Sequence record: MW879344.1
Direction: 5' to 3' (one strand)
DNA: 64,000 nt
The notes under the pieces were generated by a model. That model worked only from the letters and a program-made list of their open reading frames with translations. It made no database searches and had not been told where the DNA came from. Positions within the stretch are counted from its first letter, which is position 1, and every line of letters starts with the position of its first letter. Positions 6,963-39,035 of this stretch are shown one piece after another. A program made the position numbers and the translations under genes.

Positions 6963-7314
6963 ATTGGTTGGTATATTGAAAGATATGCCACAAAAAAAGA
7001 AATCCAGTTCTACACGTAAACGTTATACAATTATTGCGTGTGCACTAGATAAAAAAGGGCGAGTACTATCTATGAGGACAAATGATTATAATTGTTCTCA
7101 CCCATTACAAAAGTACTTTGCAGAGCAAGTAGGGAAACCAGAAGCAATATTTCTTCATGCTGAAGTCGCAACATTAATAGCAGCCCGAAAAGAAGTTCAT
7201 AAATTGCTTATTGCACGAATAGATGTGAAAGGTAACCCATTACCTGCGAAACCATGTCCAATCTGCGAAAAAGCAATTGCAGCATTTGGGGTAAAGGAAA
7301 TTGAGTACACATAA
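6949..7314 (+). CDS. Zinc-dependent cytidine/dCMP-deaminase-fold protein
   Basis: LHAE...PCPIC motif; start moved to ATG 6949 (MKITK). Confidence 0.75.
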   Translation: MKITKLVGILKDMPQKKKSSSTRKRYTIIACALDKKGRVLSMRTNDYNCSHPLQKYFAEQVGKPEAIFLHAEVATLIAARKEVHKLLIARIDVKGNPLPAKPCPICEKAIAAFGVKEIEYT

Positions 7315-7556: not shown

Positions 7557-8111
7557 ATGAAAAATACAATCATTGTGAACTTAGTTGGTGGACCATGTTG
7601 CGGTAAGAGTACTACCGCAGCAGGACTATTCGCTAAGATGAAATTACATACTAAGCAACAAGTTGAAATCGTAACAGAAGTCATTAAAGATTATGTATAC
7701 GATGAAAATAAAATGGCTATGCAAGATCAAGTACTAATTACTGCAAACCAAAATCACCGCCTATTCCGGTTAAAAGGAAAGGTGGATTTTGTCGTTTCTG
7801 ATGCTTCCCTTTTGAACGGAATTGTATATAATGAGTTTTATCATGACATGGAAAATATCAGTTCAAGAGTAGCGTTTCAATTGTACGAACAGTACGAGAA
7901 TATAGTATTTTTGCTTCCACGTAAACCAGAATACGATCAGTACGGTCGTACACAAACACTTGAAGAAGCAAAAGAACTTGACCGTTTATTTGTTGAAAAT
8001 TTAGAACATTTACGTATTCCATATATTGATATGCGTGAATACACACATGAAGAAATGCCTGATCGTATTATTGATGTTCTAAGCAATCGTTTTGGATTTG
8101 ACGTTCATTAA
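7557..8111 (+). CDS. NadR/AAA_28-type P-loop kinase/ATPase
   Basis: IVNLVGGPCCGKSTT Walker A; VVSDASLL; GRTQT. Confidence 0.7.
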   Translation: MKNTIIVNLVGGPCCGKSTTAAGLFAKMKLHTKQQVEIVTEVIKDYVYDENKMAMQDQVLITANQNHRLFRLKGKVDFVVSDASLLNGIVYNEFYHDMENISSRVAFQLYEQYENIVFLLPRKPEYDQYGRTQTLEEAKELDRLFVENLEHLRIPYIDMREYTHEEMPDRIIDVLSNRFGFDVH

Positions 8112-8169
8112 AAATTATATTTTATCAACTTTTTTATATTGGGTAAACGTTGACCTAAGTATTAAAAAC

Positions 8170-8212
8170 TTGATCTAGATCAAAGATAATACCCCTTCAT
8201 ATGGGGTATTAT
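8170..8212 (+). promoter_or_regulatory. FNR box with class II promoter upstream of nrdD
   Basis: TTGAT-ctag-ATCAA at 8170-8183 (perfect consensus); TATTAT -10 at 8207-8212 puts the box centre near -41.5. Confidence 0.65.
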
Positions 8213-8259
8213 ATATTTTAAGTGCGTAAATAATTCACCTTAACAGACACGGAGCGTCA

Positions 8260-10083
8260 ATGATGAATAATGATAGATTGTATAGTGACATTAACGAATT
8301 TCTAAACCAAAGTAATAAAGATCTTCTAAATGAGAATGCTAACAAAGATGCCAAGATTGTAAACACTCATAGAGACTTGCTTGCTGGCATTCTTTCCAAG
8401 CATTGGGCTGAAGATATTCTTTCTGAAGATTTAATGCAATGGCATAAAAATGGATATGGTCACATACATGATCTGGATTATTTTATTAGTCCTTTAACAA
8501 ATTGTTGTTTAGTAAATTACAGAGATATGTTAGAGAATGGATTTAAAATCGGTAATGCACAAGTTGGGACTCCTAATAGTATTGGAGTTGCTAGTACTAT
8601 ATTGACTCAAATTGTACTCGCCGTATCAGCTAGTCAATATGGAGGTCAAACATTAGCACATATTGACTATGGTCTTGAGCCATACGTTCAGAAGTCCTAT
8701 GAGAAGCTACAGCAGCTTCAAACAGAATTCAACCTACCGGATGAATATGTGGAAAAAGCCTTACAGAAGGAAGTGTATGATGCTATGCAAGCCCTCTTGT
8801 ATCAAGTTAACACCATCACGTCTAGTAATGGACAAACGCCATTTGTGACAATAAGTTTAGGATTAAATAAATCCAAATTTGGTCAAATGATAACTGATTC
8901 ATATTTGAAAGTACATGAAAAAGGTTTAGGTGTTGATGGCAATACTCCAGTATTTCCTAAAGTAGTTTTCTTCCTTGAAGATGGTGTTAATCTTAAACCT
9001 GAAGATCCAAATTACTTTTTAAAAGAACAAGCTATGCGTACTGCATCCAAAAGAATATATCCAGACTTTGTTTCAGTACCATTGAATAGAAAGGTCACTG
9101 GCTCAAAAAGTGTTCCTGTATCACCAATGGGATGCCGTTCATTTTTAAGTAAATGGGAAGATGATAGCGGTACTGAACAGTATGATGGTAGATTCAATCT
9201 TGGTGTAGTTTCTATTAACTTACCACTACTTGCATTAGAATCCGAATCAGATGGTGATTTCTTTGGTAAGATCGATCATCATATGAATATGGCCTATAGA
9301 GCACAGATGAACCGTGTAGAACGTCTTAAAAAGATGAAAGCACGGCAGAATCCAACAATGTTTATGGAAGGTGCAATTGCCCGTTTAGGAGCAGATGATA
9401 CTATTGATAAATTATTTTATGATGGATATGCTAGTATTAGTATTGGGTTCGTTGGATTAGCTGAATGTTCAGAAATCATAAAAGGGCATTTGAACAAAGA
9501 TTATTGTAAGTCTATTTTACATTATATGAAATATAAATGTGAGCAATTCAAAAAGGACAGTACTTTATCATTTAGCTTATATGGAACACCAGCAGAAAGT
9601 TTATGTTATAAATTTGCTAAATGTATTGAATTGAAGTATCCAAATGTTTTAAAACGTGACTTTATTACAAATTCATTCCATCAACCTGTGTGGGTAGAAA
9701 GTACTCCATTTAGTAAGTGGGATTATGAAGAAAGTTTTGCATATCTAAGTAATGGTGGTAATATAAGTTACGTAGAAACACCAAATCTATCTAACAATAT
9801 TAAGGCACTTGAAACCTTAATTGACTATGCGTATGATAGAATTCCATATTTTGGTATTAACCAACCAGTTGATAAATGCTATAAATGTGATTTTGAAGGT
9901 GAATTTGCTGTAGATAAAATTGGTTTCCATTGTCCATCATGTGATAATAGAGAAGAAGGTACTATGTCAGTAATTAGACGAGTATCAGGTTATCTAAGTG
10001 CACCTAATAGTAGAGCGTTCAATACTGGAAAACAACAAGAAGTTATTCAGAGAGTAAAACATGAAAGACAATCGAAAGAATGA
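8260..10083 (+). CDS. nrdD: Anaerobic (class III) ribonucleoside-triphosphate reductase
   Basis: GHIHDLD, TNCCL, QTPF, PMGCRSFL, GRFNLGVVSINL, YGTPAESL, CxxC..CxxC, RRVSGYL glycyl-radical loop; T4-like short form without ATP cone. Confidence 0.95.
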   Translation: MMNNDRLYSDINEFLNQSNKDLLNENANKDAKIVNTHRDLLAGILSKHWAEDILSEDLMQWHKNGYGHIHDLDYFISPLTNCCLVNYRDMLENGFKIGNAQVGTPNSIGVASTILTQIVLAVSASQYGGQTLAHIDYGLEPYVQKSYEKLQQLQTEFNLPDEYVEKALQKEVYDAMQALLYQVNTITSSNGQTPFVTISLGLNKSKFGQMITDSYLKVHEKGLGVDGNTPVFPKVVFFLEDGVNLKPEDPNYFLKEQAMRTASKRIYPDFVSVPLNRKVTGSKSVPVSPMGCRSFLSKWEDDSGTEQYDGRFNLGVVSINLPLLALESESDGDFFGKIDHHMNMAYRAQMNRVERLKKMKARQNPTMFMEGAIARLGADDTIDKLFYDGYASISIGFVGLAECSEIIKGHLNKDYCKSILHYMKYKCEQFKKDSTLSFSLYGTPAESLCYKFAKCIELKYPNVLKRDFITNSFHQPVWVESTPFSKWDYEESFAYLSNGGNISYVETPNLSNNIKALETLIDYAYDRIPYFGINQPVDKCYKCDFEGEFAVDKIGFHCPSCDNREEGTMSVIRRVSGYLSAPNSRAFNTGKQQEVIQRVKHERQSKE

Positions 10084-10477
10084 AACTTGTTATCGTAGAT
10101 GGGTGTTCGATAAGCCTAAAAACGGTAAGAAAAGAGAAAAAACATATTTTCCAAAGGGCAAGAAAATGCCCTTAAAAAAAGCATTTGATATTGTAGTGCA
10201 AGGATTACTTGCAGGAAAAGGTTTACATCCATCTGTTGATTATATCTGGTACGCAGAGAAAATTTCAGCAGAATGTAATGTTCATGTTGATTTAGTTCGT
10301 CAAGTACTACATAAATTAAATCTAGAGGGATGTTGCTCTAAAAGAATACTGTGGGATGCTAGAGGTGGAATGTTCGCCATGCATACACGGTTAGATTGGG
10401 GTGACGCAGTAGTTCCTTGGGAAGCAAAAGAGTATCATGTAAATATGGATAAACTTAAAGAGAAATATGGAAAATGA
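10061..10477 (+). CDS. Hypothetical protein
   Basis: 138-aa ORF overlapping the nrdD stop. Confidence 0.55.
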   Translation: MKDNRKNETCYRRWVFDKPKNGKKREKTYFPKGKKMPLKKAFDIVVQGLLAGKGLHPSVDYIWYAEKISAECNVHVDLVRQVLHKLNLEGCCSKRILWDARGGMFAMHTRLDWGDAVVPWEAKEYHVNMDKLKEKYGK

Positions 10478-10644
10478 TTCAATATGTAATTACTGAAGGA
10501 ATACATACTGGAACTATATTTTCTATTATAATGTCAAGAAGTGTTGTTTTGAAATCTGACACTATTCCAGTTGGTACATTGCTATCAAATATACCAGATG
10601 ATGAACGCATGAAAATGAGATTTAGAGTTTATGATCCCAATTGA
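10474..10644 (+). CDS. Small hypothetical protein (56 aa, not in ORF track)
   Basis: ATGA overlap with previous stop; fills the gap. Confidence 0.45.
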   Translation: MIQYVITEGIHTGTIFSIIMSRSVVLKSDTIPVGTLLSNIPDDERMKMRFRVYDPN

Positions 10645-11140
10645 TTTAAAAGAAAGAGAGAATATGATCTTATATTTCTCTCTTAAAAATAAGAATGGTT
10701 ATTCATTAGATAATTATGATGAAGTACTAGAACAATTAATTTCAGATCTTAAACCAAAAGTACAACAATATTATGCAATTATAATTCCTGAAAGTTCATC
10801 ACCATTTTTAGAAGATGTTGTTAAGCGATGTGGAAAACCATATATTATTGTAAAGAAAAATAATATACAGTACTTTAAAGATTTAGCACCAACATTAGGA
10901 TTACAAAAGGCTGAGCTTAAAAGTCATTTATCTAGAATGGATGACATGGGAGAATCTTTCAAAATTAATATGTTGAAAGCTACTCAGCGTGATAAGTACA
11001 TTGAAAGTTTATTTTGTACTACAATCTCCCCTAACAATTCTATCATTATTGATGATAGTAATTTCTCTGGAAGTACCAAAAAGGCATTACAGTTTAGTAC
11101 TGGATGTTCTGAGTACTTACCAATTTTTACAAAAGGATAA
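10631..11140 (+). CDS. Phosphoribosyltransferase-like protein
   Basis: [13 protein letters not shown] resembles the type I PRTase PRPP-binding loop. Confidence 0.5.
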
Positions 11141-11144
11141 TAAA

Positions 11145-11507
11145 ATGACAATCAAAGCAATTCAAATTCTACGTGGTGAACACGAAGGTACAATTTTGAT
11201 TCATGATGAAACAACTGCACGTGTAATTGTTTCCAAAACATTAGAAGAAGATTCTGAATTACCAATGGCACAATTTTGGGGTGAATCTGTTCGTGAGGTT
11301 AATATCGAATATCCAACCTTAATTGAGGGTGGTCAGCATTTAAATGTTAACGTACTAACACGTGAACAATTGGAAGATGCACAACAAAATCCAGAAAAGT
11401 ATCCACAACTAACTATTCGAGTTTCAGGTTATGCAGTTCGCTTTAACTCTTTAACCAAAGAACAGCAAGATGATGTAATTTCTAGAACTTTTACTACTAA
11501 GGTATAA
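11145..11507 (+). CDS. grcA: Autonomous glycyl radical cofactor
   Basis: [11 protein letters not shown]...[35 protein letters not shown]; start moved to ATG 11145. Confidence 0.92.
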
Positions 11508-11513
11508 TGTAAC

Positions 11514-11562
11514 AAAACTCCCTTTATATGATAAATAAAATCATGGTTGTAAAGGGAGTTTT
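11514..11562 (+). promoter_or_regulatory. SD-sequestering hairpin with late-promoter motif in the loop
   Basis: aaaactcccttta (11514-11526) / taaagggagtttt (11550-11562); TAAATA at 11532-11537. Confidence 0.7.
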
Positions 11563-11565
11563 AAT

Positions 11566-12495
11566 ATGCCAAGAAAATTAACAAATGAAGAATTTTTAAA
11601 TAAAATAAATGAAATACATGGAAACAAATTTTCATTTCGTGATGAATACAAAGGTTCACAACTAAAAATGAATATTCACTGTAATAAATGTAATTCTGAT
11701 TTCATTTCTACGGCAAATATATTGTTAAGTGGTAAAGGATGTAAGAAATGTTCAGATTTAAATGCAACAAAGTCTATTGATGAATTTAAATCTGACATAA
11801 AAAAAATTTATGGAAATAAATTTACTTTAGTTAGTGATTATACCAGATTGATAGATAATGTAACGGTTGAATGTAACTTACATCATAAACAAAAAACATT
11901 AAGAGCTAGAACATTTATGAAAGGTAATACCGGATGTGATGACTGTTTTATGAAAAATGGAAGAAAACATTCTATCACAACTGATGACTTTATTGAAAAA
12001 ATCAAAAAAATTGAAAAATTTATTGCATATGATTTTTCAAATTTTAATTATATTAATTCTAGAACTAAAAGTACTGTTATATGCGACAAAGGTCATTCTT
12101 TTATGATTTCACCATCATCCTTAATATCTGGTAGAGGGTGTAATGTATGTTCCTTACATACAATAACATCAAAAGCAATGAATGATATAATTACAATTTT
12201 AGATAATAATAACATATCTTATGCTAGAGAGAAAACATTCGATCAATGTATGAATAAACAAAAATTACCATTTGATTTGTATCTAATAGATTATAATATT
12301 TGCATTGAATATGATGGAAAGCAGCATTATGAAATATGTGATCATTGGGGTGGTGAAAATGAATTTTTATCAAGAAAAAACAATGATAAAATTAAAACAA
12401 ATTTTTGTGAAGAAAATAATATATTATTATATAGAATTAGATATGATGAAGATCATATAAAAGCTATTACAACAATTTTGAGAAGTTTGATATGA
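11566..12495 (+). mobile_element. Free-standing homing endonuclease gene
   Basis: Three N-terminal EF..K....G..F...C repeats with CxxC pairs; C-terminal LPFDLYLIDYNICIEYDGKQHY PD-(D/E)xK/Vsr-like nuclease; very AT-rich; inserted between grcA and nrdG. Confidence 0.75.
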
Positions 12496-12965
12496 ATTAT
12501 ATGAAAATTATAAAAGATGATCTAATTAATGGCAGCGGAGTAAGATGCACTTTATTTGTTAGTGGTTGTTCACATGGTTGTGCAGGATGCTATTCGCCTC
12601 ATACGTGGGATTATCGTTCAGGAACACCATTTAGTACTGAACAAATCAATGATATTCGAATTGAATTATCAAAATCTTATATTGAAGGATTAACACTTTT
12701 AGGTGGAGATCCTTTAATGCCAAAGAATATTGATACAGTACTAGAACTATGTAGAATCGTTAAAGAAGAATTTCCAGATAAAAACATATGGTGCTGGACT
12801 GGATATACATTAGAGCAAGTACTTTCCAATCACGCACATGATGCATTACAATATATTGATGTATTAGTAGATGGAAAATTTGAGGAAGAATTAAAAAATC
12901 TAAAATTATCATTTAGAGGTTCAGAAAATCAAAGAGTACTTTTTAAAGGAAAGGACTATGACTAA
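12492..12965 (+). CDS. nrdG: Anaerobic RNR activating enzyme (radical SAM)
   Basis: NGSGVRCTLFVSGCSHGCAGC (CxxxCxxC), GLTLLGGDPL, DVLVDGKF, FRGSENQR. Confidence 0.95.
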   Translation: MNYMKIIKDDLINGSGVRCTLFVSGCSHGCAGCYSPHTWDYRSGTPFSTEQINDIRIELSKSYIEGLTLLGGDPLMPKNIDTVLELCRIVKEEFPDKNIWCWTGYTLEQVLSNHAHDALQYIDVLVDGKFEEELKNLKLSFRGSENQRVLFKGKDYD

Positions 12966-13137
12966 AGAAGTTATTGTTTATGATAAGAAATTTCATGAAG
13001 ATGAAATAGAAATGATTGATCCGATGGATTTTTTAACAGATGATGTTGTAACAGATGTATTTGGACTACCACGAGGAACGTTTCATGTAGTGGTTACATT
13101 TACACCAGATCCAAATTATGATCCAGATGAAGAATAG
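12958..13137 (+). CDS. Small acidic hypothetical protein (59 aa, not in ORF track)
   Basis: SD aagga, ATG 12958, TAG 13135-13137. Confidence 0.55.
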   Translation: MTKEVIVYDKKFHEDEIEMIDPMDFLTDDVVTDVFGLPRGTFHVVVTFTPDPNYDPDEE

Positions 13138-13159
13138 GCACCCATAGGGTGCCTTTTTT
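13136..13159 (+). terminator. Rho-independent terminator
   Basis: aggcaccc-ata-gggtgcct + T run. Confidence 0.8.
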
Positions 13160-13214
13160 GTTTATACCCTCAATAAATACAACAATGAATATCTAAATTT
13201 TTTAAGGATATAAA

Positions 13215-38993: not shown

Positions 38994-39005
38994 AAGTAAA
39001 AAAAA

Positions 39006-39035
39006 TTGAAACGCCACAAAATATTGTGGTATAAT
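39006..39035 (+). promoter_or_regulatory. Promoter, 18-bp-spacer class
   Basis: TTGAAAC...TGGTATAAT. Confidence 0.65.

Follow-up and report, generated by a model that had tools for sequence, protein, structure and literature searches.

Several natural promoters that are activated by FNR, among them narG, dmsA and pflB-P6, have their FNR sites centred at about -41.5, and a perfect consensus box is rare among natural FNR sites. In E. coli the sites ahead of nrdD are reported at -64.5 and -33.5, and those of yfiD (grcA) are at -40.5 and -93.5. Phages too can carry sites for a host regulator ahead of auxiliary genes, as seen in cyanophages (PhoB pho boxes before pstS or phoA, and sites for NtcA). 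Both the kind of mechanism considered here, a class II FNR promoter, and the control of phage auxiliary genes by a host regulator are known. The present subject is a perfect 14-bp palindrome matching the FNR consensus (the FNR box in what follows) upstream of the class III ribonucleotide reductase gene nrdD, in a stretch of 64,000 nucleotides from sequence record MW879344.1; this whole stretch will be called the window. It comes from Erwinia phage pEa_SNUABM_49 (100% identity; window position 7000 corresponds to position 69000 of the record), a RaK2-like jumbo phage, and the phages most closely related to it belong to Eneladusvirus, a genus of RaK2-like jumbo myoviruses with genomes of about 358 kb (Serratia phage BF, 99.7%). 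We consider it likely that the box functions as a site of FNR activation for the nrdD unit, acting on a class II-type, sigma-70 promoter that would occupy positions 8170-8219.

The resemblance to class II FNR promoters (e.g. fdnG, PMC3349551) lies in the fact that the phage TTGAT-N4-ATCAA overlaps the -35 position with no -35 hexamer present, that a -10 element follows 21-23 nt downstream, and that the target is a gene of anaerobic metabolism. Unlike its chromosomal counterparts, however, the phage promoter is carried by a lytic jumbo phage and has a perfect consensus box, its spacer is filled by a predicted terminator hairpin that overlaps the -10, and a probable late-type promoter lies 20 bp downstream. 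With E. coli nrdDG the phage has in common the same enzyme pair and, as proposed from its sequence, the same regulator; the host genes are FNR-regulated, being activated in anoxia (work of 2008 cited in PMC4009431). The two regulatory regions are nevertheless built quite differently: in E. coli, nrdD is preceded by two imperfect sites, TTGAGCTACATCAA and TTGATGCAAAGCAC, 31 bp apart, next to which is an NrdR-like box, and its leader measures about 200 nt, whereas phage nrdD has a single perfect site centred at about -42.5, a predicted leader of some 40 nt and no NrdR box (a search near nrdD allowing up to 3 mismatches found none). The single perfect site and the missing NrdR box indicate that the phage promoter is an independent design and not a copy of the host's. 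The comparison with E. coli yfiD is of a similar kind, in that a GrcA homologue is co-regulated by FNR with anaerobic functions, as would be the case in the phage, but no FNR site precedes the phage grcA itself, which is situated 2.9 kb inside the nrdD unit. As for the cyanophages, the likeness is that of a lytic phage using a site for a host environmental sensor to have an auxiliary gene on only in the matching host state, while the regulator, the signal (oxygen as against phosphate or nitrogen) and the host group are all different. A search of the full-text literature, the coverage of which is incomplete, uncovered no publication in which FNR controls a phage nrdD or in which these phages are said to have an FNR promoter.

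What we propose is as follows. In an anoxic cell, a dimer of host [4Fe-4S]-FNR would bind the box about 42 bp upstream of the start, where it would substitute for the absent -35 element and recruit host RNA polymerase to the weak -10 TATTAT, transcription starting near 8219; in air, FNR would be inactive and the promoter silent. The hairpin and T run at 8186-8212 would stop read-through from the upstream nucleotide-metabolism genes, which would make early nrdD expression dependent on FNR, and the late-type promoter TAAATAA at 8227, 20 bp further downstream, may add late expression. That FNR binds here, where transcription begins, that it depends on oxygen and that the hairpin terminates are inferred; the sequence elements with their conservation and spacing, the covariation, the gene content and the distribution of fnr between host and phage are observed. 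The elements concerned are these, the inverted repeat, TATTAT (8207-8212) and TAAATA (8227-8232) all being where the preliminary description of this DNA had placed them:

8145-8155, + strand: conserved block AAACGTTGACC (in relatives AAACGTTRAYC) situated 15-25 nt ahead of the box, from an alignment of 10 relatives
8170-8183, no strand assigned: FNR box TTGATCTAGATCAA, perfect 14-bp palindrome centred at 8176.5, from consensus match and conservation
8186-8212, + strand: predicted RNA hairpin with a 10-bp stem and 7-nt loop, then a T run, from terminator scan, folding and covariation
8207-8212, + strand: predicted sigma-70 -10 TATTAT, 23 nt after the box and within the 3' arm of the hairpin
8213-8219, + strand: T-rich terminator tail and predicted FNR-dependent start (+1 near 8219), placed from the position of the -10
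8227-8233, + strand: TAAATAA, probable core of a late-type (T4 gp55-like) promoter with a predicted late +1 near 8238, from conservation and motif match
8251-8254, + strand: Shine-Dalgarno sequence GGAG, invariant in the alignment of relatives
8260-10083, + strand: nrdD, class III ribonucleotide reductase (Pfam NRDD 1e-159, Gly_radical 5e-22)

Placement and conservation of the FNR box

The box matches all 10 consensus bases of TTGAT-N4-ATCAA, as the preliminary description had claimed, and ends 76 nt ahead of nrdD; its half-site, TTGA and not GTGA, separates it from a CRP site. It is the only exact match in the 64-kb window, where sites with at most one mismatch are not enriched (13 found, as against 9.9 +/- 3.3 expected). 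Genome-wide counts were made on a composite genome of 359 kb, put together from pieces of Serratia phage BF and the window. This contains three exact boxes where 1.4 (from base composition) to 2.1 (Markov-1) would be expected, so that the motif count is not significant by itself. The other two (BF record 296175-296188 and 299096-299109) fall in small hypothetical genes of a tRNA-rich region and, with no -10 at class II distance from either, probably arose by chance; TTGATCTAGATCAA is the sole intergenic exact box of the composite. Boxes matching at nine of the ten positions number 75 in 359 kb, or about 2e-4 per position, and none of the 72 listed nine-of-ten sites is in a promoter context. 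On these counts the signal that exceeds chance is the placement of the box within the 148-nt gap ahead of nrdD (chance about 1e-3 by position), together with its conservation in relatives.

Whether related phages keep the box, a point raised in the preliminary description, can be answered plainly: TTGA-N6-TCAA is retained in 15 distinct nrdD upstream sequences, which come from Eneladus-, Mimas- and Asteriusvirus, Phapecoctavirus and uncultured relatives. Across five phage groups the half-sites are kept and the 4-bp spacer and both flanks drift. When all 15 sequences are compared, the majority base has a frequency of 0.97 at half-site positions, 0.87 at spacer positions and 0.62 and 0.69 in the two flanks. 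These figures are partly circular, since a motif search was used to locate the box in the three lineages that do not align; the inner half-site bases differ in four of the sequences. An identical box stands ahead of nrdD in BF, the Yersinia phages fHe-Yen9-03/04 (Yen9), Pectobacterium phage CBB, Cronobacter phage GAP32, phage XbC2, Erwinia phage Kaldavass and two uncultured genomes, while in UViG_3300042923 both half-sites are intact and the spacer has changed to TTAT. In the jumbo contigs that have no hairpin (L015, L029/L031 and L030) a canonical terminator is followed by the box, then by exactly 23 nt and TGA-TATAAT, the box spacer being CTAG or CCAG and one of these boxes having GTCAA. Three further sources show the same layout even though their upstream DNA does not align with the window:

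Asteriusvirus 121Q/PBECO4: box TTGATATAGGTCAA (9/10), gap of 22 nt, -10 TATAAT
Phapecoctavirus phiWec179: box TTGATCCTGAACAA (9/10), gap of 21 nt, -10 TAAAAT, TG-extended (TGG-TAAAAT)
L033/L048: box TTGACTAAGATCAA (9/10), gap of 22 nt, -10 TAAAAT

The block AAACGTTGACC, conserved in most Eneladus/Mimas-type genomes, forms the 5' edge of the conserved promoter module; further upstream, the members of the 10-relative alignment are unrelated. A check of this block (AAACGTTRAYC) for a second FNR half-site or for ArcA repeats gave no convincing match, nor did it fit any other known site, and an Rfam scan of 7900-8500 gave nothing credible.

A separate observation concerns methylation. The box holds two GATC (Dam-type) sites and a TCTAGA, and the outer spacer bases C...G that form the GATC sites are kept in 12 of the 15 sequences; DNA methyltransferase genes are close by in this phage family, so that methylation might affect FNR binding.

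Promoter geometry and the hairpin in the spacer

If the predicted -10 is taken to span -12 to -7, +1 falls at 8219 and the centre of the box at -42.5, in keeping with the earlier estimate (+1 near 8218-8219, centre at -41.5/-42.5). The earlier statement that there is no good -35 holds as well, the hexamer at the -35 position (8184-8189) being AGATAA, which matches TTGACA at 1 of 6 positions. In the relatives the box is 21-23 nt ahead of the -10, giving a predicted centre of -40.5 to -42.5, and those without the hairpin have TATAAT or TAAAAT at the same offset, often TG-extended, again with no -35. Alternative -10s situated 6-8 nt downstream (TATATT and TATTTT) were considered and rejected: they would place the box near -48 to -50, where sites are not known to serve for activation, and the hairpin-free relatives point to the +23 hexamer. 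Good sigma-70 promoters (TTGACA with a TG-extended -10) are found ahead of other genes in the window, and RpoD-like promoters were predicted for this phage family in the CBB genome paper (PMC5259590); for these reasons host sigma-70 polymerase would be expected to read the region.

The regulator would be that of the host. A tblastn search of the composite phage genome with E. coli FNR gave nothing better than E 1.7 (a very remote homologue being possible), and a phage-encoded regulator of the FNR/CRP kind was set aside on this result. FNR is 96-100% identical in the 80 best matches among at least 580 enterobacterial genomes; in the host E. amylovora (Ea1189) fnr is present and a deletion mutant has been made (PMC6895013). 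In turn, nrdD, nrdG and yfiD belong to an oxygen-limitation response conserved in Dickeya, Pectobacterium and E. coli (PMC3349551).

The inverted repeat between box and start had been suggested to add a second control, but terminator scan, fold and covariation all favour an upstream terminator over an operator. Its arms, ATAATACCCC at 8186-8195 and GGGGTATTAT at 8203-8212, pair with one another; the match found in the terminator scan has 10 pairs, 4 of them G-C, and a tail ATATTTT, and folding gives a dG of -14.5 kcal/mol (z -3.5). Among the nine hairpin-bearing relatives, to which the covariation analysis was confined, 94% of cells are paired and compensatory changes occur in 4 of the 10 pairs; none of 500 shuffles reached the observed covariation score, registers slid along the alignment are 39-58% paired, and one U-G pairs on the + strand only. 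No other terminator-like element is present between the upstream gene and nrdD, while relatives that lack the hairpin have a terminator just upstream of the box instead. Most likely, then, the hairpin is the intrinsic terminator of the upstream gene's transcript, lying within the promoter spacer and insulating nrdD: the transcript of the gene at 7557-8111 would run into it, and a transcript from about 8219 would not contain it. We read the arrangement as a terminator relocated into the promoter spacer, with its 3' arm doubling as the -10, which would be a neat example of regulatory compaction. Heptamers resembling NarL sites (TACCCCT/TGGGGTA) can be picked out in the arms with a 7-5-7 spacing, but as they are absent from Yen9 and from the hairpin-free relatives they were taken as a by-product of the stem.

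Start codon annotation is also touched by the position of the -10. In PBECO4 (NC_027364.1, locus 2929) the annotated nrdD start is an ATG within the predicted -10 (TATAATG), while the 121Q annotation places it 88 nt downstream of that point, behind a ribosome-binding site; in PBECO4 the start has probably been called too far upstream. In the window, a second ATG at 8263 may be the homologous nrdD start.

The late-type motif and competing explanations

Besides the partial circularity mentioned above, a number of points weigh against an FNR-dependent promoter at 8170-8219. The genome-wide number of exact boxes is no higher than chance; the spacing gives -42.5 where the canonical value is -41.5 (a natural FNR site at -42.5 is that of fdnG, PMC3349551); TATTAT is embedded in a hairpin arm, and two relatives, Yen9 (TTGAAT) and UViG_3300042923 (TTTTTT), have a degenerate -10; the extended consensus -10 of the hairpin-free relatives could fire with no activator at all. 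In addition, the phage encodes sigma factors of its own (BF gp243 and gp413) and may alter the properties of the polymerase during infection, and nrdD could be expressed from the downstream late-type promoter whether or not oxygen is present. Public sequencing runs containing this sequence yielded short assembled contigs, which show neither direction nor transcript ends.

The late-type motif merits fuller treatment. TAAATAA is invariant in the 10 aligned relatives, and 14 of the 15 distinct upstream sequences have TAAATA at the same offset, the exception being L033/L048. Its distance from the box is 43 nt in all 13 distinct RaK2-like sequences and 42 nt in phiWec179, and Asteriusvirus keeps the 43 nt although its -10 offset is 22 and not 23. 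Within the window TAAATA is about 10-fold denser in intergenic than in coding DNA (2.53 as against 0.24 per kb), most sites being 27-52 nt ahead of a start codon. The preliminary description had called it a late-type motif, and it is probably a real late-type promoter, in which case FNR need not be the only route to nrdD expression. The CBB paper predicts late promoters with ATAAATA or CTAAATA (family motif nTAAATA), also for GAP32; of its three promoter classes none is listed for nrdD, CBB_141 not being among the predicted late promoters, and it reports a gp55-like protein, with gp33 or gp45 not found (PMC5259590). BF gp243 is annotated as a "sigma factor for late transcription". The T4 late box TATAAATA, which the phage CGTAAATA matches at 6 of 8 positions, spans -13 to -6 (PMC2988020), and by that measure the FNR box would be centred at -61.5 relative to a late start at about 8238.

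The features just described also form the case for supposing that nrdD is driven only by the TAAATAA promoter, through the phage's gp55-like sigma factor, with no sigma-70 role for the box. The invariance of the motif, its enrichment and its placement before start codons, the agreement with the late motif predicted for CBB and GAP32, the constancy of the 43-nt distance even where the box-to--10 distance shifts from 23 to 22, and the -61.5 centre (-61.5 being the canonical class I position) are all consistent with this, and conservation of the box would then reflect descent in a slowly evolving module, or class I action on the late promoter. We nonetheless think it unlikely. The motif is here CGTAAATA or TTTAAATA, not the ATAAATA or CTAAATA of the CBB late promoters, among which CBB_141 is in any case missing; L033/L048 carry the box and the -10 but no TAAATA; genes of nucleotide metabolism are required before late times; and descent alone leaves the retention of the half-sites in lineages that do not align unexplained. 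Furthermore, we know of no activator-dependent promoter of the gp55 type.

The constant distance between box and TAAATA (43 nt in 13 cases, 42 nt in Phapecoctavirus) has led us to consider as well that a single FNR dimer might serve two stacked promoters, acting in class II fashion, from -41.5/-42.5, on an early sigma-70 promoter and in class I fashion, from -61.5, on a later gp55-type one. This is a speculative idea that we regard as rather doubtful; the spacing may be coincidence or simply inherited. Were it true, a host oxygen sensor would be activating transcription directed by a phage sigma factor.

Very unlikely, in our judgement, is that the palindrome is not an FNR site at all, having arisen by chance or for structural reasons, or being the target of a phage DNA-binding protein or of a methylation-sensitive factor. 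The genome count of exact boxes does fit chance, the CTAG spacer is kept in 10 of the 15 sequences, which goes beyond what FNR needs, and the box with its two GATC sites and TCTAGA occurs in a phage family with methyltransferase genes nearby. However, the spacer changes seen in relatives (TTAT, CCAG, ATAG, CCTG and TAAG) lose one or both GATC sites and TCTAGA and keep TTGA-N6-TCAA, a fixed distance to a -10 that has no -35 is the signature of an activator site, and no FNR/CRP-like protein was detectable in the phage by tblastn. The idea that FNR acts as a repressor, blocking in anoxia a promoter whose spacer contains the box (TTAAAA at 8162-8167, 17 nt, GATAAT at 8185-8190), seems to us extremely improbable: a consensus scan does list this pair at 9/12 matches, but such pairs occur at the chance rate (37 found as against 32.8 expected), Yen9, CBB, GAP32 and the hairpin-free relatives do not keep the hexamers and do keep the offset of the downstream -10, a transcript from about 8197 would start in the hairpin arm so that its first 20-odd nt would be most of the stem and then the T tract, and repressing an anaerobic enzyme in anoxia would make no physiological sense.

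The nrdD unit, its distribution and its hosts

The preliminary description had FNR switching on an operon nrdD-grcA-nrdG. As far as activation is concerned, phylogenetic footprinting strongly supports a class II mechanism; the gene order as given does not stand, the three genes not being adjacent. The genes and open reading frames (ORFs) around the promoter are as follows:

7557-8111, + strand: upstream gene, AAA_28/thymidylate-kinase-like (Pfam AAA_28 2.3e-19; annotated in BF as thymidylate kinase)
10061-11140, + strand: three small ORFs (138, 56 and 169 amino acids) with no family match
11145-11507, + strand: GrcA/YfiD homologue, autonomous glycyl radical cofactor (Pfam Gly_radical 1.3e-17; best PDB match 6owr, GrcA, 6.7e-30)
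11566-12495, + strand: inserted zinc-finger ORF of 309 amino acids (DUF4379/DUF723), among the closest relatives found only in pEa_SNUABM_49
12492-12965, + strand: nrdG, radical-SAM activase (Pfam Fer4_12 6.8e-52)
12958-13137, + strand: ORF of 59 amino acids with no family match, last gene of the unit
13136-13160, + strand: predicted strong intrinsic terminator closing the unit, from the terminator scan

The terminator scan found no other terminator-like site between 8213 and 13135, and for this reason everything from nrdD to the terminator at 13136 (nrdD, the three small ORFs, the grcA-like gene, the inserted ORF, nrdG and the last small ORF) is plausibly a single transcription unit. The 138-amino-acid ORF directly after nrdD has no match in Pfam, and the GrcA homologue has only the glycyl-radical motif in common with the phage NrdD. 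Alignment with near-identical relatives ends at window position 11508, and the interval between grcA and nrdG (window 11508-12551) is an insertion hot spot: in pEa_SNUABM_49 the 309-amino-acid ORF has its own GATAAATAA motif ahead of it, at 11530, whereas BF has an unrelated 447-nt ORF in its place, the Yen9 phages and GAP32 have an added methyltransferase-like ORF, and CBB has a "structural protein".

Possession of the reductase does not by itself imply possession of the box. Homologous NrdD and NrdG are encoded by T4-like, T5-like, Felix O1-like, GAP52 and rV5-like phages, yet the regions upstream of nrdD in these, and in Slopekvirus, contain no FNR box, which rules out the box as a general property of phage nrdD genes. 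Gene 49 and nrdD adjoin in T4-like phages, leaving no gap between them, and in the T5-like phage nrdD has a full sigma-70 promoter (TTGACA, 17 nt, TATAAT). In the rV5-like genomes (L034, L035, L037 and L045) NrdD is 60-64% identical and has an N-terminal extension, ATP-cone-like by its start sequence, and the gene begins with GTG or TTG directly after the preceding gene, leaving neither gap nor box; where the box has been lost or gained, the N-terminal extension and the intergenic gap have changed with it. Since these other nrdD regions have no box, the FNR module is specific to one nrdD cassette, which RaK2-like jumbo phages share with Phapecoctavirus and a few relatives and whose NrdD has an identity of at least 60% with that of the window.

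One member of this group has a puzzling host. Xanthomonas is, to our knowledge, an obligate aerobe that has no FNR regulon of the enterobacterial type, and Xanthomonas vesicatoria is the host deposited for XbC2, which carries the complete FNR-box module and nrdD (OP292654.1 72225-72403); either its natural host is a different one, or the module is idle there.

If the proposed control is confirmed, a strictly lytic jumbo phage would be reading the oxygen status of its host through the host's own sensor, so as to make the oxygen-labile class III reductase, its activase and the GrcA spare part only where they can work, with the class Ia enzyme serving in air. Oxygen, through FNR, would then join the short list of host regulators that control phage auxiliary genes, so far mainly those for phosphate and nitrogen in cyanophages, and the box would serve as a simple marker, open to testing, by which to recognise phages suited to anoxic surroundings (gut, sludge or waterlogged plant tissue, for instance). 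The same module occurs in phages of E. coli, Klebsiella-type hosts, Cronobacter, Pectobacterium, Yersinia, Serratia and Erwinia that are considered for biocontrol, and it would follow that their replication at low oxygen may depend on host fnr.

Elsewhere in the window, at 38995-39035, the arrangement TGAAACG, 16 nt, TATAAT matches what was reported for CBB and GAP32 as a second, divergent class of promoter; the spacer of this putative promoter contains a palindrome, CCACAAAATATTGTGG, that is also a weak match to an NrdR box.

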